A stretch of DNA of 63,854 bases, filler included, from Bigelowiella natans CCMP2755 (GCA_000320545.1; 9 parts of 9 records of this genome joined end to end with filler, not necessarily neighbours in it), one strand, 5' to 3'. Positions 1 to 10,773 are shown, numbered from the whole stretch's first letter. Program-made: numbers and translations. The notes: a model not told the origin generated them from the sequence alone.

Positions 1-80
1 TATGTATTGTGCATCACCGCCCCCATAGCTATCCTGATCCTCTCCCCCCCACTCCTCCCCCTCCTCGAATAAATATATAG

Positions 81-158
81 TTAGAGGAGTCTAACGTAAA
101 GATGCAGAAGGAACTATCTGCTTTGAAGGAAAAGATCCAAATTTTTCAGAAGCAGTAA

Positions 159-198
<40 letters not shown>

Positions 199-312
199 AC
201 TTTTGTGTTAAAATAAATCTCTCCATATTGTATTAATTTTTTTCCTATCTTCCATTTATTCTTTATTTACAACATTGAACGAAGTGATGATGATAAAGTA
301 GTTGTATAGTAT

Positions 313-354
<42 letters not shown>

Positions 355-455
355 ATATATATATTTGGATTTGTGCACTTATTGCAGGCGTATCGAAGCA
401 AAAAGTGAAGCCGAAATGGAAATGAAAAACGCGTGTATGTCTCTCCCCTGCAACA

Positions 456-513
<58 letters not shown>

Positions 514-758
514 TCCCACCAATATGCGTGGTGTTGATGATACACAGTGAATAAGCTAAAAGAGGCTCATAAGCAAGAGATGGAGAATCTGGCTGGAATA
601 TCGAAGAGGGCTGAGGTAGCAGTAGTAGTTGTTGGTGGTTGAGGTGGTGGTGTTGATGATGACGATGCTATTGCTGCTGCCGCTGTTGTGCTATGTGACG
701 TATAGAATGATGGATATTATTACTATGTTGCATATAGAATGAAGGAATACATCTAGAT

Positions 759-796
<38 letters not shown>

Positions 797-1505
797 GTTG
801 TTCCCAACAAATTCTATGATAATTTGCTGCTTCCAGGCGAAGAGAAGACCATATTATCTCTTTATAATGCGTTGTTGTAGTTATGCAAACCAGATCATGT
901 TAATTATTGTGTCTTGAGTTGAAGTTGCTGCATGTCATCTCCTATTTGGCACTTCTTCTTTTTCTCATTTGTGGTTGTCGTTGCCTGTTGTTCTTTGCTA
1001 TTATCTCCATCGGTGTACTAGCTCTCGAGCCGTTTAGAGGCTGAATCCGCAACAGAACGCTATAAAAGAGAGATGGAAGATGCTAATGTATGGGCGACTA
1101 ACTCAACATCACCCATTTCATGATTGATTCCCAACAGCAGCACGTGCGTATATACCATCGTCTAAGAGCGTTGTGTATAAAGGGGAGTGTGCTGTAATAT
1201 GACCTAGTACTTATTTTAATGTGTGTAATCATCATCATCATCATCATCATCAACATCATCATCATCGTACTCGCCAACTTATCAGTTAAGACATAAGGCA
1301 GAGTTAAAGGCGGAGAGGCAAAGACACGAAGAGGAGATGAAGGTTGTCTTTGTTCATATTATGTACTACGGTAACAAGCAGCTGCAACACTAATAAAGTA
1401 CCTCCCTCAATGTGCGATTCCTCTTCTTTTCATCTTCTTCTAGGAACTACAAGATCGAAGGAATCAGAAGATGTTGGATGAGAATGCTTCCGATAAGGTT
1501 CTATT

Positions 1506-1554
<49 letters not shown>

Positions 1555-1980
1555 CATTAACTAATATATTAATAGATTAGTGGTAGTAGGGTCAAGTAGT
1601 AGGTAGTAAGTAGTATCCAGAGTGGTAGTAGTACCATTAATTTCGTACATGATGCACAGAAGGAGGCCATACTAGTGTTAGATTTGTTAGATCAATCAAT
1701 GTTAGTTTCAAGAGGGAAAAAAAAGAGGACTAAGAAGGAAGCGATAAAAGATATTCTGTTATATACTTTGAATTGTATCACGTCGATGCACAGCAAATTA
1801 TGCAGTTGGAAACACCACTCACTCACTCACTCACTCACTCACTCACTATAGCAACCAACGGATGGTGATTAGTTTACCACAACCCTTTTTAGATTAATCG
1901 TAAGCCATGTATTACTCATGATTCAAGATACACATTTTACTAACACTGTATGCACATGTCGCACACTCTCTTCTTCTCTT

Positions 1981-2029
<49 letters not shown>

Positions 2030-2328
2030 GTGTGTGTGTTTGTGTGTGTGTTGTGTATGTGTCTATGTAGAGGTCATTGGAAGATAAGCATGCAAAACTT
2101 TTAGAGCAGATCAAGAAGAAGCACACAGAAATGGTTATATGATTTGATTCACTACAAATATATAATAATGATAGATGACGCTGACCTATTATCTCCTGAT
2201 AGTATTCAAAAATAATATCAGTATCAAGTGTCAAGATAGAGAAATTTGTTGTAATTGTGGAGTAATTATAACAGAGTTCATTTCTCCATCAAAACTTCGT
2301 AACGGCCATAATATTATGAAAATACTTG

Positions 2329-2367
<39 letters not shown>

Positions 2368-2423
2368 ATGTGTGTACGTGTGTACGTGTGAATGTTTTGT
2401 AAAATTACCACCCGTATAGAGAT

Positions 2424-2462
<39 letters not shown>

Positions 2463-2586
2463 AACAGAAAGAAAAGAAGACAGACACACGCACCCATCGT
2501 GTAGGAGCAAAGACTTGAACAAGAGAAAGTCCAGTTTGAGAAGAATATGAGAGATAAACTAACAGAAGCTCAAGCTAAACTTCTTG

Positions 2587-2625
<39 letters not shown>

Positions 2626-4054
2626 AAAGTAGTACAAGTAGCACAAGTCGTAATCAAAGGAGTAGAAGTAGGGAAATGAAGACTCTAATTATCAATCCTA
2701 CTAATTTTTTGATTAAAGTCGGAATATAGATATGATGGATGGGACAACACTAAAGATGATGACTATTCATTCTCCCTCTTCTGAGAGAGGACTGAATCGT
2801 CGGTCTTTCATTTCTCCAATTGCTCTATTATTATTATCACCTATAACATCCCATCATCACAATTATTTCGTTTGATAATCAATATCTGTTATTTCTTCCA
2901 CCACTGCTACTATTGCTTACTATTCTCCATGTAAAGAGATGGAAAGAAAACGTGGAGTGGCTGATACAATGGCAAGAGATGAGAAAGAGCATCTTCAAAA
3001 GCAGCTAACAGAGGAAACAAAGAAGCTTAAAAATCTGAGAGTAGATTTTGAAGCTATAACGACGATTGCCAAAAAAGATAAACAGGAAGCCAAAGAACAG
3101 CAAATGCAACTACAAAATAGAATAAAGTCTGAGAATAAGTTCGTCGTTGTTTTGACCTACTGCTATCGTATAATTGGTTAGCATGATCTCTTCTGAATAT
3201 GAGTAGTACCACACTATGTTAGGTTGGGTGGGGGTCTGATAACAATGATAATGATAATAGACTGAGAGGAAGAGGAAATGACTTATGAATATATTTTTTT
3301 CGTGTTATCCTTCTTCAGAGAATTGGAGAATCGAAATGTGCAGCTAGCAAGTGATCAAGGCGAGGCTGTAAAAAAGGTCAGAACGAATGTCACTATTTGT
3401 AAGCAAAGCAGCATTTTTTATACTTTGCAAACAAATTCTTTTTCTTTAAACGTTGGTGTATTGTGCTGTTTGTGTCTATTAAGGTCCAAAATGCATTGGA
3501 AAAGGAACGACAGGTGTGGTTATAATAGTAATTAGTGACATGTTGTTACTTTGTGTATTTGTTCTACATATTTCCTATACCTAATGCTGCATGAGTGGTA
3601 GGCTATTTCACTTCGTTTATCCACCCATATAAATTTGAATAGATGCGTTAGGTTATTTTTAGTCTTTGATCATCATCATTTTATTAATAATGCTTCTTGT
3701 TTGCTGCATCAACCATTGCACTAATGAAGCTTCGAGGTCAAGTCAGCTCTGAGTTAGAGAAGGTATTAGATTCGTGGATTATCTGATGATGATGATGATG
3801 GTGGTGGTGGTGATACTGCTGTGATGTTGTGTCGATATAGGGAGTGGTGAGGTTGAGTTTGGAATGTGAACAACAACAACAACTACTACTACTACTACTA
3901 CTACAACATACTACTGCTACTACAGAATGAGAGAGGAGACATCAACTCGCATACATTATAAAGAGAGATTTATACGGAGAGGGGGGGAGGAAGAGAGAGA
4001 AAGCAGTAGTTCCTGAAGTTTATGGGAGAGCAAAAATGACTTACATGATTTATG

Positions 4055-4087
<33 letters not shown>

Positions 4088-4202
4088 CTAATGCTAATGC
4101 TAATGGTAACTAAAAATTGACTATTGACGATAGTTCAAAAGCAAGCTAGAGGGTGCAGTGGAGCGCTATTCACGTCTGGAGGCTAATCTAGAAGAACTCA
4201 AG

Positions 4203-4233
<31 letters not shown>

Positions 4234-4620
4234 CAGCATATTGCAGACCGATCTTTTCTGAGGAGAAGAGGCCAACTAGTTTGGTGATGGATAAAACAAT
4301 ACCGTAGCACTTAAAAGTATTATACACTCATGTTGTTTATCTCCTATCATCATTTACTACAGAAGCAGAACGTCTTGAATGAAGAAAAGCTTAAATCGAA
4401 ATACGAAGAGTCAAAGACTACACTAGTAGCAGCCAATGAGCGAAATCATTCGCTTATAGTTGATAATCTTAAGATGCTTCAAATTAAAGTAAGAGGGCTT
4501 GAGACAAAGAAGAAGAAACGAACATGATCAATAACCTAATAATTCAAGAAATACTCACTATATTTGTTATATGGTAGTATTATTCTTACACGAAATGATG
4601 ATGTTTGCTGTTTATGTGTG

Positions 4621-4660
<40 letters not shown>

Positions 4661-4755
4661 TACCTTTTAAGGTGCGAGGAGCCATGGCTTGGTCTGCATT
4701 CTCTGGAGACACAAATCTCGATTTTTTGCAAAGTAGATGATGATGATAATGATTG

Positions 4756-4790
<35 letters not shown>

Positions 4791-5037
4791 GTGATGAGGT
4801 TATGTGGACTAGTATTGAATCACTTGAATTAGAAGAATGGATTACTTGAGATAGATGAGCGAGTGATGCCCTCCTCCCACTTATGTTGCTATGATCAGTA
4901 CTGACAATATATAGTACCATATAGATGAGTACTACTTCTGTCATCTTATTCTTCTTGCTATTCTCATATTAGGTAACTTTGGCATTCAAATCATCTCGAT
5001 TAAGAAAATTGAAGTTGCGAAGTTATCAGGATTTGAG
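81..5037 (+). CDS. Multi-exon coiled-coil protein of unknown family (5' end outside window, 3' end uncertain)
   Basis: Series of short AG/GT-bounded exons with E/K/Q/R-rich translations (LEESNVKMQKELSALKEKIQ; VNKLKEAHKQEMENL; EQRLEQEKVQFEKNMRDKL; FKSKLEGAVERYSRLEANLEELK) separated by microsatellite-rich introns. Confidence 0.7.
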
Positions 5038-7046
5038 GTAGGAGGTTAAACTTATATAAATAGTAGTAACACATTAGATCAATGGTAGGAGGAAGAGGTA
5101 TGATAGAAAGTCGTCCAAAAGAATTAATTACTGACTGACGCACACTACTTTAGGATAGAATGTCCAAAATAATAATTACTGACAGACAGACACTACTGTA
5201 GGACGCGCATTTGATTATAAGCGTAGTATCTGGTCAAGGACAACCTCTTGGAAGGGCCTGTCGCTGCGAAGTAAAAGGGGGAGGAGGAGGAGGAGGAGGA
5301 GGAGGAGGAGGAGGAGGAGGAGGAGGCATGGCGCAGATTGTCCTAGGTCCAAAGGGAGACAATGGTTAGTTGTGAATAAGCGAGTATTATTGAAACGAAA
5401 TTAGGATTTTCAAAAACAAACTATTACAACACCATGCGCCGCACTCAAAAGAAGGGATGTTACTCCACCATCATACAATGAAAGTTTTATAAAAAGTGCC
5501 CTTCTCGTCCACAACGCACCAATCTAAAATGAATAGTGACAACCACATGACAGCTAGGAGTAGGGTAGGCAAGTAACAACTACTTGATGAAAATGTATTT
5601 ATCATGACACTGAATACACCTTCCCAGGGCCATATGTATTTGTGGAGCTGAAGCATTCGAAACAAAAGAAAGGATTTGTCAAGGTAACAATAGCAAGTCG
5701 CAAAAAATAACAGTGAACAATAAGGAAGAACACATAGGCAACAATTGACAAAAGTTTTCAAATAAGTAGTCGTCTGTTGGTTTATGGTGATTAATCATGA
5801 ATAAATGTTGGTTAATGATGAAAATATGACTGCCATTCTGTTGCACGTATCAGATGAGCACTCGATGTTTTGCGTTCTACAAGCCGGTAAATCCACATGA
5901 ATGTGGGATTGATCAACTCTTTGGATGCCATGTGTTATTTGAACAATTTGAAATTTTCTCAGCACGAAAAATCAGGGGACTTCGAATTAGTATTTTATGA
6001 AAAGCCCACGGAGTTGACAAGAGATCAAGAAAAACTTCGTTCTCGCAAGAAGATTGGTAGCATTTTTTTTTGATGGTTTCAATTGCAATTCAGTCTTGAA
6101 CAACCTCCTCACATCTCAAGTCGTACCATTGCAATCTTTCTCAGGAAAATTGCTGCTGAACTCCAAAATTGGCACTCCGGGAATGTGATTGAGATGCAGC
6201 AGGGTTTGGCGACATGAGATTGCATCTAAGACCGCATCTGCATGCAGCTGTGGCCGCTGCATTGAACAGCTACATTGGGATGACCTGTAACCATTAAACA
6301 AATTTGATTCATTGATCATTGCATCCGTTTTGCACTCAAAGCCATGCCTTTGTCACCGTGCAAAAGGCATTGCTTCATCGAAAAAGGTGTGCATGGCTCA
6401 AACCATGCTCCTTGCACACAAGGACTCTGTGCGCAATCCTGTGATCATTGCCAAAAGATGCATTCATTTTGCTGTGGCAGTTTGTCAGAGGAAAAATGCT
6501 GCGCAAAAAAAAAAAACAAGATCGCAAGCTTTTTCACATCATTTTTGCGCTCATTCATGCACCAAACATCATTTTGCGAACAATGCGTTCCCAAAACTGC
6601 CATTCAATGTTCAAAGAGTTCGGAATCAGAGTTTGGTTCGCACTTGTGCGAGTCACAGCTCGCGGTCGTGCGTTTGAAACAGGCACAGCACTTTGCATGG
6701 CAAGCGAAGACCAAATTTCATCAAAGGCCAATGCATTTGCAGTGGTTTGTCATTGAGCCAATTTCCTGTCCAGCTGGCCTGGGGTTCTTTTCTCAATCAG
6801 GCCGGGGCGAAATGACGATCAAAACGAGGGGCAAAGTGAGGAAAACTGGTGCCAGAAATCGACCAGGGCATTTTCCAAACAAAAAATGACGCAAATTGCA
6901 ACAAAAATTGGTGTGAGTTTTGTGTCAAAACTGGAATGAGGGTCAAACCAACGAATTTTGGTGTGAAGCATGGAACAGAATCAGCAAATGCGTCAGGACA
7001 AGGGTTGCATTCAGGAAAAGACCACTAGAAAAATCACGGCCACTGC

Positions 7047-7160
7047 TCAGGGTTTGGGTCAGGGTTTGGGTCAGGGATTGGGTCAGGGATTGGGTCAGGG
7101 TTTGGGTCAGGGTTTGGGTCAGGGTCAGGGTCAGGGTTGGGGTCAGGGTCAGTGTCAGGG
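7047..7160 (+). repeat. Array of degenerate telomere-variant repeats (TCAGGG, TTTGGG, ATTGGG, TTGGGG); looser variants continue to about 7570
   Basis: Hexamer periodicity, e.g. tcagggtttgggtcagggattgggtcaggg; no canonical TTAGGG. Confidence 0.85.
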
Positions 7161-7601
7161 TTTTCTCCTGGGCCACGACCAAAGTGACGACCAAAGTGAC
7201 GGTCGAAGTGAGGGTCAAAGTGAGGGAAACTGGTCACAAAAATCGACCAGGGTTTTTTTCAGGGCAAAAGTGAGGACCAAAGTCACGGAAAGTGGTGAGG
7301 GTTTCGTGTCAGGGCTGGGATGAGGGTCAGAGTCACGGTTTTTGGTGAGGAGTTTGGACCAGCATTGGGGTGAGGGTCGGGGTGAGCATCGGGATCAGCA
7401 CTGAAACCAGGAGTGAAACGAGGAGAACAAGTCAGGAGCAGTTTCAGGAACAAAACCACGGCCAAAGTGAGGGGTGCGACAAGGGTCAGGATCAGGATTG
7501 AAATCACGCCCAAATTGAGGGCTGCGACAAGGATTGAAACCAGGGCCAGGACGAGGGTTGGGGTGAGCAAAGTTTTCAGGAAAGTTTTCAGGGATTTGTC
7601 A

Positions 7602-7837
7602 AGGAAAGAACTCAGGAGAACTTTCAGGGTTTTGTTCAGGAAAGAACTCAGGAGAACTTTCAGGGTTTTGTTCAGGAAAGAACTCAGGAGAACTTTCAGG
7701 GTTTTGTTCAGGAAAGAACTCAGGAGAACTTTCAGGGTTTTGTTCAGGAAAGAACTCAGGAGAACTTTCAGGGTTTTGTTCAGGAAAGAACTCAGGAGAA
7801 CTTTCAGGGTTTTGTTCAGGAAAGAATCCAGGAGAAC
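7602..7837. repeat. 36-bp tandem minisatellite, 6 identical copies plus a diverged partial
   Basis: Unit AGGAAAGAACTCAGGAGAACTTTCAGGGTTTTGTTC starts at 7602, 7638, 7674, 7710, 7746, 7782; partial at 7818. Confidence 0.95.
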
Positions 7838-8433
7838 CGCATCACGGAGGAGAATGGGCCCACAGGAGTCAGAGTTCAAGTTGACATCACAAATCGTGTG
7901 CCGTGAAACATTCATGAGCCAGACTCTGATGGGCCCATGGGACCCATGCTCTCTCGTTTTCCACTTCCAACCAAGTGAAGAAATCATTCCCATCATCTTG
8001 ATTGCACTGATCATTCATGCCATGTTGATGATCCCTTCATTTGAATCGGTGACATTTTGTTTCGAGTCGCCATCATCATCATCATCATCCTCATTGCCAT
8101 TGTCATCTGCCATTTCAGATGTTGCGTTCACTCGTTTGCTTCACGTGCAGAGTGTGCAGTGTCAGGTGGCAAGAGTGGTGAAATCACAAAGAAGGGCATG
8201 GCCTTTGCTCACATGGAAAAGAATTGGGGCAACGTCCGCTTGAACACCCACCACGCAAATGATGTGTGAGATGGATGATGATGATCACTCAAAATCATGA
8301 AACAGATCACAATGACACTGTCAACCATGTGGGTCAGTTGAGCATGGAGAGAAATGCTCTGCACAATCGCACTGGACACTGCTGCTTCATGTTTTTCCTT
8401 TTCTTCCTCCCCTAGATCCTTCATCAGAGACAT

Positions 8434-8471
<38 letters not shown>

Positions 8472-10535
8472 GCCCTGCTGCTTGAAGGTTTTCCCAATTG
8501 CTTGGATGTGGTCACAAGCGATTGGCATGATTGACGGTAGCACAGCTGAATGATCACGAAGATGCTTGAGAAACATGATTCTTGTGTCAGCACCACTCAT
8601 TCGCAAGTGATGTTGTCTCATCTGCTCCTTGTCGCAAACTCAGGATCACTCATTTGAGCTGGTAGCTGCTTCCTGCATGGCATCTCATTTGGTACCCAGA
8701 GTGAGTGTGACAGCGCTGAGAGCTCCAAATGTGCACTGGGACTTCAGGCTCTTGAATGAGCATTCTTTCAAGTGCAATCGATGCAGTCTGACCAAAGACA
8801 TGGGTGAAACGATGACTAGGCATCACACACACACATGTGGCAACTAACTGCTTTTTCTCCCAACAACAAAGCACATTCTGACGATCATCCTGACCAAAAA
8901 TCAGCTCAATGAGTCGTTTCCACAGTTGTCATGATGTCGCCTACACATTCACTGATTGGTGGCCTTCATGTCCCCCACCCTTGAGTCCCTCTTCCTCCCC
9001 CCTTTTCCACCCACAGGCACGTGGGACTTTGCTGTTGAGTCCAAAAAAGACGGACGCTTGCTTGCTCTCAACTTCAGTTCTCCCTCGTCGAGTTTCTCTG
9101 AGAGATTGCTCACACCTGCACACAATGGGTTCAGCAATGACACAGGCATTGGAGGTCCATTCATTTGCAAGGAGATCGACAATTGCACACTCGAAAAGAT
9201 GTTCTCATCAAAGTGGTAGTAGCAGTGGCAGTGGTTGTCGCAGATTCAAAACAACAATTCCACAAATTGTGACAATGGCAATGACAATGACGATGAGATG
9301 CCTTGTGCCATCCTGAGAAGTGAGCTTTTTCTTGTGAATGCTTCTTTTCTTTTCACGCCTCAGCGAAAGAGTCTTGCACAGCTCACGTCGATGCATTGGC
9401 CGTGGACACGAGCAGAGACAACAATGAGCAGCTTCTCAAGGCTAGAATCTGTCAGGTTGTCATGAATGCCGAGCACGATTTGGTGTCAAAATCACGGCGG
9501 TGATGTGGGCGTTTCTCATTGTTTGCATGCAAATTTTTTGTTGGTGATGATTTCAGTCTCAGTCTTCAACTGCTCAGGCTGCTCTCGAGTTTGGAGGTGA
9601 ATGTGCAACTTGGTCATGATGGAAAAACAGAGCAGATGCATGAATTGACATGATCAATTGATGCGTTGAAATTTGAGAGCACAACATTGCATCTCGTTGC
9701 CTCTCTGATGCCTGCTGGGGTCAAGACTTCAAAGTGCCAACTTTTCAAACTTTCTGGCATGTTCTCCGAGATGTCAAACCATCACAAATCAAGATGAAGG
9801 TTCAGATGCACCATGATGAGATGTGTGCCATCATGCATGTCCATTGTGAACGCAACAGTTTTCATCTAGCAATTGAAGCTTCTGCACTATGAACAACATG
9901 CATGAATTTGAAGTGCAATGTCAATGTCTCCATGCTTTGCTCACATTTCGACCTTGCTAGCTTGGGCGCATTGCTAGCTAGCTAGATGAATTGTTGGAAG
10001 AAGCACATGGCGAGACTAGGAGGTGGCTAGATGGCGAGAGCATGTCATCAATCCAAACGACACACACATCTAGATGTGTCGACGTTCATCAGGTTTGCCC
10101 ATCACATTCAAGAATCGGCGGCTGCATTCATTTCAAAAATGAATTGACACAGCTGTGGCGCTGCCAAGTCTGGAAGTTGTTGCCCACATCTGATTTAGCC
10201 ATGCTTGCATGCATGCACTTGCACGCAGATGCAAAGTGATGAATGCAGCCACGTTGTGATGGCCATCACGGCCGCACTCATTTCGATGGTTGGCAATTTG
10301 ACCCAGGGATGACAATGTGGAATGTTGATGAGGTAGAAGGTCGCATGTCGGCTCTGTCAACATTTGCAGCTAAGATTCACCAGTCGAACGCATGAAAAGA
10401 CGATTCATTGAAATTCGACAATGCAATGCTCCAATTTGGAGTGAAAAAAATTTCCCTTTGATTCAAACAAAAGTCTAACGCATCTACAAATGTTACGCAT
10501 CCTTCATTGCCTAAAAAAGGAGAGAAAAATGATCA

Positions 10536-10773
10536 TTAGGGTTAGGGTTAGGGTTAGGGTTAGGGTTAGGGTTAGGGTTAGGGTTAGGGTTAGGGTTAGG
10601 GTTAGGGTTAGGGTTAGGGTTAGGGTTAGGGTTAGGGTTAGGGTTAGGGTTAGGGTTAGGGTTAGGGTTAGGGTTAGGGTTAGGGTTAGGGTTAGGGTTA
10701 GGGTTAGGGTTAGGGTTAGGGTTAGGGTTAGTTTTAGTATTAGGGTTACAGTTAGGGTTAGGGTTAGGGTTAT
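10536..10773 (+). repeat. Telomeric (TTAGGG)n array at contig end (about 39 units, last few degenerate)
   Basis: Near-perfect TTAGGG tandem ending at the N gap, G-rich strand pointing outward. Confidence 0.95.

Follow-up and report, generated by a model that had tools for sequence, protein, structure and literature searches.

A telomere-adjacent TpA-depleted zone as the probable footprint of targeted TpA to TpG/CpA hypermutation

Comparison with described hypermutation systems

A single preprint, on the chlorarachniophyte Bigelowiella natans (Mettrop et al. 2026; bioRxiv 10.64898/2026.01.13.699255, version of 2026-04-14), is so far the only report of targeted A:T to G:C hypermutation in nuclear DNA. 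Here, we describe a zone of 4.5 kb, extending from about position 6000 to the start of a terminal TTAGGG array, from which TpA has almost vanished and in which CpA and TpG are in excess. The zone lies in a piece of 10,773 bases that carries the array at its 3′ end and belongs to the window, i.e., the whole stretch of DNA analyzed (63,854 nucleotides, filler included, from B. natans CCMP2755, GCA_000320545.1); positions are counted from the first base of the window. In our opinion, the zone records a genuine, locally targeted hypermutation that has converted TpA into TpG or CpA over time and that equals the B. natans process in kind; we assign this reading a probability of roughly 75%.

The preprint examines 15 B. 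natans mutation-accumulation lines by Illumina sequencing, with Sanger confirmation of a subset. The integrated giant-virus (186 kb) and virophage (25 kb) regions contain 231 of the 302 nuclear single-nucleotide mutations, and the mutation rate in both is about 1000-fold over background; A>G and T>C together make up 230 of the 231 and, according to the authors, are located at TpA, which becomes TpG or CpA (Mettrop et al. 2026). The same study reports 324 predicted coding sequences with a mean TpA frequency of 0.0018, together with 124 genomic clusters that are poor in TpA and rich in CpA+TpG, a cluster being defined as an unbroken run of three or more 1-kb windows in which Rho_TA is ≤ 0.43 and Rho_CA+TG is ≥ 1.52. 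The authors favor deamination as the mechanism and propose an ADAT2-like adenosine deaminase as the candidate enzyme (Mettrop et al. 2026). A first, sequence-only reading of the DNA studied here had stated that no eukaryotic system with this spectrum was described; that statement no longer holds, as the preprint describes one and likewise proposes an adenosine deaminase.

The locus shares with the published system the kilobase scale of the affected regions amid normal neighbors and the long-term outcome of TpA-poor, CpA+TpG-rich clusters, and probably also the restriction of change to TpA and the conversion to TpG or CpA on either strand. By the published definition, 8001–10535 qualifies as a cluster. 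Values within the thresholds are found in 8001–9000 (Rho_TA 0.10, Rho_CA+TG 1.84), 9001–10000 (0.12 and 1.71), and 10001–10535 (0.25 and 1.65), and also in 6001–7000 (0.08 and 1.62). The interval 7001–8000 has a Rho_TA of 0.02 but, because of its G-rich repeats, a Rho_CA+TG of 1.26, which is under the threshold. Mettrop et al. observed active change in an integrated giant virus and a virophage, which have so far lost only about half of their TpA (Rho_TA 0.45), whereas the present zone is telomere-adjacent, non-coding, without recognizable viral remnant, and near-saturated (Rho_TA 0.02–0.25), and its CTAG sites are apparently immune. The foreign (viral or transposon) origin of the target that is a feature of the published clusters was not found here with Pfam, PHROGs, or Rfam, which is a weak negative. 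Telomeres, CTAG, and a 3′-neighbor rule are not mentioned in the preprint. New relative to it appear to be the telomere-adjacent, native-looking, non-coding target, the near-saturation, the rule that separates TAH from TAG (H being A, C, or T) with immunity of CTAG, and the TCAGGG arrays, which are probably telomere repeats altered by editing.

Table S2 of the preprint provides independent experimental support for the same context bias. Counted by hand over the two viral regions, and not corrected for site availability, the A>G changes fall on TAA (33), TAT (39), TAC (25), and TAG (4), and the T>C changes on TTA (38), ATA (37), GTA (31), and CTA (19); the remainder consists of four T>C entries for which the table gives the trinucleotide as ATG or ATT, and of a single C>T. 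With the strands pooled, the 226 mutations divide into 71 at TAA, 76 at TAT, 56 at TAC, and 23 at TAG, TAG/CTA being the least used context (10%). It should be noted that in this table A>G at TAG (4) falls far short of its complement, T>C at CTA (19; binomial p = 0.003). The table also lists several TpA mutations that lie outside the viral regions and within a few kb of a scaffold start (scaffold_100:281, scaffold_134:539, scaffold_146:2024/2049, and scaffold_78:6956), possibly at chromosome ends.

Fungal repeat-induced point mutation (RIP) is another locally targeted, dinucleotide-specific transition hypermutation that affects both strands and has fairly sharp edges, and action on repeated or silenced DNA is plausible for both. 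Nevertheless, RIP changes C to T at CpA and raises TpA and AT, whereas here TpA is erased and GC goes up. The opposite polarity, already pointed out in the sequence-only reading, is evident from the loss of TA (observed-to-expected ratio 0.01–0.17) and the gain of CA and TG (1.2–1.9), and RIP is rejected for this reason. Hyper-editing by ADAR enzymes, if copied back into DNA, would resemble the zone in its A to G change with a 5′ U preference; however, it edits many non-UA adenines, whereas AA and GA are untouched here. ADARs prefer a 3′ G, the opposite of the rule at this locus. An ADAR-type footprint was therefore rejected, TAG being the protected context and AA (1.18) and GA (1.06) being unaffected. 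In the case of ADAT2/ADAT3 and TadA, tRNA adenosine deaminases with a side activity on DNA, the adenine that is naturally deaminated, A34, follows U33 and thus stands in a U-A context, and we know of no exclusion of a 3′ G for these enzymes. Their deaminase chemistry, as in amphioxus BjADAT2 (PMC10354150) and Trypanosoma ADAT2 (cited in Mettrop et al. 2026), would yield A to G; in measurements with hairpin or single-stranded DNA, BjADAT2 acted on A in the context GAA and on C in the context TCG (PMC10354150).

Extent and products of TpA depletion

The depletion is most complete in the saturated zone 6301–8411 (2111 bp), where the sole TA, part of a CTAG at 7026, stands against 144.9 expected from base composition (observed-to-expected ratio 0.01; Poisson log10 P = −60.8). 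The strongly depleted unique sequence that follows, 8412–10535, has 26 TAs against 156.1 expected (0.17; log10 P = −37.3), nearly all of them CTAG or half-sites of CTAG. By comparison, the flank 1–6300 has 607 TAs vs. 629 expected (0.97), and in the flanking control 1–5300 Rho_TA is 0.8–1.2 in every 1-kb window. The observed-to-expected ratios of the presumed products are raised: CA reaches 1.88 in 6301–8411 and 1.74 in 8412–10535, and TG reaches 1.20 and 1.69, respectively. AA (1.18) and GA (1.06) show no effect in the zone, and GC content climbs from 0.36 to 0.45–0.50.

CpG is without any special effect, its ratio being 0.49–0.53 in the zone vs. 0.59 in the flank. Both the single TA in 6301–8411 and the persistence of CpG had been recognized in the sequence-only reading, as had the consequence that CpG decay is not the cause: deamination of 5-methylcytosine cannot remove TA and is rejected. 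The CA/TG excess, the unchanged CpG, and the TCAGGG array described below are what a transition-only change at TpA would leave.

The depletion sets in at about 6000. Counts in 200-bp steps and the full list of TAs place the last normally spaced TAs at about 5988–5997, and the observed-to-expected ratio drops from 0.63 in 5501–6000 to 0.15 in 6001–6500. The segment 6001–6300 is a transition zone of partial loss, with six TAs in 300 bp, three of which have no protecting neighbor. The depletion stops at 10535, where the terminal TTAGGG array starts. Thus, of the extent first proposed, 6301–10535, the distal limit stands, and the onset has to be moved from 6301 to about 6000. Windowed TpA ratios and NTAN context counts confine the depletion to about 6000–10535 and bring out an excess of CTAG among the surviving TAs.

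The strength of editing does not follow a gradient toward the telomere: 6301–8411 is cleared even of half-sites, and 10190–10535 keeps seven TAs. The telomere-adjacent 350 bp may be younger or may have been replaced through recombination. No long (TA)n arrays are present in the zone. Relics of (TA)n microsatellites, sought as in-phase mixed CA/TG runs, are in weak excess, with 9 vs. 4.2 expected and 12 of 500 simulations reaching 9.

Searches of the zone for coding, viral, or homologous sequence were negative throughout. Scans of the 10 longest reading frames with Pfam and PHROGs gave only sub-threshold, low-complexity matches and none above the cut-offs, and an Rfam scan of the whole piece gave no match. 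Protein homology searches with the reading frames at 6344–6886 and 7386–8240 returned no homologue, and look-ups of the exact products of two reading frames of the zone matched no contig. Metagenome scans with the 36-bp repeat of the minisatellite described below found 0 matches, whether exact or with Y/R at every CA/TG to admit unconverted copies.

Context rule and telomere-like arrays

In 6301–10535, 27 TAs survive, of which 12 are CTAG, 13 are half-sites (CTAH or DTAG, D being A, G, or T), and only two, the GTAC at 8693 and the TTAC at 10494, are unprotected. The recount upholds the earlier tally of about 26 survivors with 12 CTAG, about 12 half-sites, and two that are neither. Twelve or more CTAG among 27 TAs would arise with a probability of 1e-13 given the NTAN mix of the flank and of 5e-9 given the base composition of the zone, and the frequency of CTAG in the zone equals the expectation from base composition. 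No ATAN tetramer is left, and TAT is left once. Seven of the CTAG sites form a cluster at 9958–10071 (9958, 9975, 9979, 9983, 10017, 10028, and 10071), which includes GCTAGCTAGCTAG.

We described survival by a model in which each strand is hit at rate x, or at the relative rate r if its A precedes G; the expected surviving fractions are exp(−2rx) of CTAG, exp(−(1+r)x) of half-sites, and exp(−2x) of all other TAs. Fitted to the 12/13/2 survivors under three assumed ancestral NTAN mixes and 250–450 ancestral TAs, the model gives x of about 2.0–2.6 and r of about 0–0.14, with an upper bound of 0.28; with three classes and two free parameters, this is a weak test. The survivor counts agree with independent hits on each strand and a nearly immune 3′-G side. 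Among the product trinucleotides, TCA/TGA, GCA/TGC, CAA/TTG, and CAT/ATG are increased most relative to the flank, and CCA/TGG and CAG/CTG least.

CA and TG are equally frequent in 7850–10535 (288 and 290, respectively) and finely interleaved. Their alternation is at or above random (z = +1.7 in 7850–10535 and z = +3.1 in 6001–6790), and strand-coordinated tracts were looked for without success. We conclude that hits fell on both strands, one site at a time, rather than in long tracts on a single strand.

Telomere-like arrays serve as an internal test of the rule. Because the A of TAG on the G-rich strand would be spared and the A on the C-rich strand (CCCTAA) would be editable, TTAGGG is predicted to become TCAGGG, not TTGGGG. 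An interstitial telomere-like array is located at 7047–7163 on the plus strand, in the same orientation as the terminal array (Tandem Repeats Finder: 12-nt unit TCAGGGTTTGGG, 9.8 copies). It contains 11 TCAGGG, one TCAGTG, four TTTGGG, two ATTGGG, one TTGGGG, and no TTAGGG, in contrast to the terminal array, which contains 36 perfect TTAGGG and no TCAGGG. The internal TCAGGG array is more likely a product of the same TpA process than a telomerase variant. TCAGGG and other variant telomere repeats are known from telomere bases and interstitial arrays, and the array described here resembles them in lying inside a subtelomere in telomere orientation; it differs in that the variant is exactly the one that the local TpA rule predicts from TTAGGG and in that its surroundings are free of TA. 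The rule proposed in the sequence-only reading, i.e., TA to CA or TG on either strand with an A before G spared, thus finds support in the model fit, in the TCAGGG array, and in the de novo spectrum of B. natans.

Other repeats of this part of the zone are a minisatellite at 7586–7837 (plus strand; Tandem Repeats Finder: 36-bp unit, 7.0 copies, 97% matches), whose copies have three TCAGG motifs each and zero TA, and a decayed field of G-rich 12-mers (GGTCAAAGTGAG, GACCAAAGTGAC, and similar) at 6800–7550. The TCAGGG array is flanked by a 172-nt internal duplicate, 6810–6981 vs. 7194–7365, with 72% identity. These duplicates were considered for polarizing the changes and proved unusable, as they are degenerate 12-mer arrays. 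A (TTG)13 repeat at 8434–8472 also lies within the depleted zone, and the sequence distal to it, about 2.1 kb, is complex and unique.

Proposed mechanism and alternatives

On the basis of the depletion, its boundaries, the survivor classes, and the excess and interleaving of CA and TG, all of which are directly observed, we propose that A:T to G:C transitions would occur at TpA only, turning it into TpG or CpA, and that each TA would be open to attack from either strand. Attack would be strongly disfavored where the adenine precedes G, which is the same as an opposite-strand thymine preceded by C. Because 3′-G adenines are disfavored, CTAG would be immune on both strands, CTAH and DTAG would be open from one strand only, and all remaining TAs would vanish. 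No CpG would be produced, since after one base change the site is no longer TpA. The process would be near saturation on this native-looking, non-coding subtelomere, and renewal by telomerase would keep the terminal array as TTAGGG. The most likely chemistry is enzymatic deamination of adenine to hypoxanthine in T-A-H, which replication would copy as if it were G. What attracts the process is probably that the subtelomere is repetitive, heterochromatic, or silenced, and not that the DNA is foreign.

Several points weigh against this interpretation. The products ACA/TGT are up only slightly although ATA and TAT are erased, which a simple rule does not explain. The sole eukaryotic ADAT2 with measured adenine editing of DNA prefers GAA, not TA (PMC10354150). 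In B. natans, TAG/CTA is still mutated (23 of 226), so that protection there seems weaker than the near-immunity fitted here, although the B. natans counts are uncorrected for site availability. The zone holds no recognizable remnant of a viral or transposon protein, unlike the published targets; heavy mutation could mask such a remnant, which makes this a weak negative. Moreover, we infer the direction from TA to CA or TG rather than polarize it, the searches having yielded no unmutated paralogue, allele, or sister-strain sequence, and the sequence of the zone is that of the assembly consensus, not of raw reads. Finally, GC content in the local exons (0.40) and introns (0.34) is lower than the average values for B. 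natans (0.49 and 0.41, respectively).

The same footprint could be left by another chemistry, in which the thymine of D-T-A is attacked, for example, by TET/JBP-type oxidation to 5-hydroxymethyluracil (5hmU) or 5-formyluracil that mispairs with G; T would change to C, and a 5′ C would block the reaction. A>G at T-A-H and T>C at D-T-A are one event on opposite strands and are inseparable by sequence. Thymine modification in TpA context occurs in other protists, as base J at kinetoplastid telomeres and as 5hmU in dinoflagellates, which counts in favor of thymine attack, whereas 5hmU:A pairing is, to our knowledge, not strongly mutagenic. The DNA adenine context measured for ADAT2, GAA and not TA (PMC10354150), is a further point for it; on the other hand, the authors of the preprint identified an ADAT2-like candidate and favor deamination (Mettrop et al. 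2026). On balance, we regard attack on thymine as unlikely. An artifact of basecalling would mean that the true DNA is still TA and that a dense, TpA-specific modification of the subtelomere led a long-read basecaller to call G for A or C for T. Methylated adenines are indeed miscalled as G in a strand-specific manner in nanopore data, and one published chlorarachniophyte assembly is nanopore-based. However, if the two strands were miscalled independently, many TA and CG calls should remain, whereas TA is close to zero and CpG shows no increase. The basecalls are correct in the terminal TTAGGG array, the boundary is sharp, and Illumina and Sanger data from B. natans confirm the same spectrum as real (Mettrop et al. 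2026); these observations make a basecalling artifact very improbable.

A third alternative dispenses with mutational bias: TA or UA may have been selected against, through a UA-specific nuclease or TA-inserting transposons, or foreign DNA may have been TA-poor already on arrival. The self-complementarity of TA means that a purge of UA from one transcript would clear both strands, and UAH-specific endoribonucleases are known in bacteria (PemK/Kid). Such selection would nevertheless have to fix each of about 300 non-coding sites, and it is at odds with losses that look like transitions (CA, TG) and not like all substitution types, as well as with protection by a 5′ C in addition to a 3′ G, which requires both strands. 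Neither a coding nor a foreign signature was found with Pfam, PHROGs, and Rfam, and the mutational mechanism has been directly observed in B. natans (Mettrop et al. 2026). Selection or a TA-poor foreign origin is, in our view, scarcely credible. Biased gene conversion was also considered as a cause and rejected, as were codon or stop-codon constraint, there being no coding signal, and a TA-free origin from telomere-like seed repeats, 8412–10535 being complex unique sequence.

Under the targeted hypermutation that we propose, a telomere-adjacent target without viral signature suggests that targeting follows chromatin or repeat state, not foreign origin. If true, such targeting would tie genome defense to the evolution of subtelomeres and would explain TCAGGG-type variant arrays as edited telomere repeats. 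A broader claim can be made only tentatively: possibly, a chromatin- or repeat-directed system of DNA base editing targets subtelomeres native to the organism in addition to integrated viruses, with strict T-A-H specificity and immunity of CTAG, by means of an adenine deaminase capable of acting on double-stranded DNA, or a thymine oxidase, distinct from the tRNA enzyme ADAT2; such a system would be a eukaryotic counterpart of fungal RIP with opposite polarity. Because the present example is near-saturated, the rule is directly readable (TAH hit, TAG spared, CTAG immune), and it gives a concrete specificity for in vitro tests of candidate enzymes. For base-editing technology, too, an adenine editor that occurs in nature and is specific for TA in DNA would be of interest.

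The piece represents a chromosome end, since 10536–10773 (plus strand) consists of 39.5 copies of TTAGGG as delimited by Tandem Repeats Finder, which are unconverted. The last telomere units, at 10715–10773, are variant (TTAGTT, TTAGTA, TTACAG); they could reflect sequencing errors where the contig stops or genuine variation at the distal end. On the other side of the depleted zone, 1–5300 served as the flanking control; it is occupied on the plus strand by a multi-exon coiled-coil gene with short, microsatellite-filled introns and has normal TpA. According to frame translations, the gene spans 95–5050 and comprises at least 14 very short coiled-coil exons of 30–204 bp (mean about 70 bp, GC 0.40) with GT donors. 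The introns are 100–580 bp long (mean about 260 bp, GC 0.34), start with GT, and are dense in di- and trinucleotide microsatellites. A search of 1.84 billion representative proteins with the exon of 68 amino acids at 2936–3139 gave no match at E ≤ 0.001.

TTAGGG telomeres, high intron numbers, and abundant simple repeats are reported for chlorarachniophytes, B. natans and Amorphochlora amoebiformis both having TTAGGG-type telomeres and many introns, and the TTAGGG telomere, the many short introns, and the abundance of simple repeats in the piece are compatible with this group. The genome of A. amoebiformis has a GC content of 27%, lower than that of the local exons and introns. Microsatellite density is very high throughout 160–5330, where (AT/TA)n occurs six times, along with (AC)n, (TG)22, (CT)31, and (AG)21 and with (GTA)n, (CTA)n, (ATC)n, (GAT)20, and (AGG)17; several introns of the flanking gene open directly with (GTA)n.

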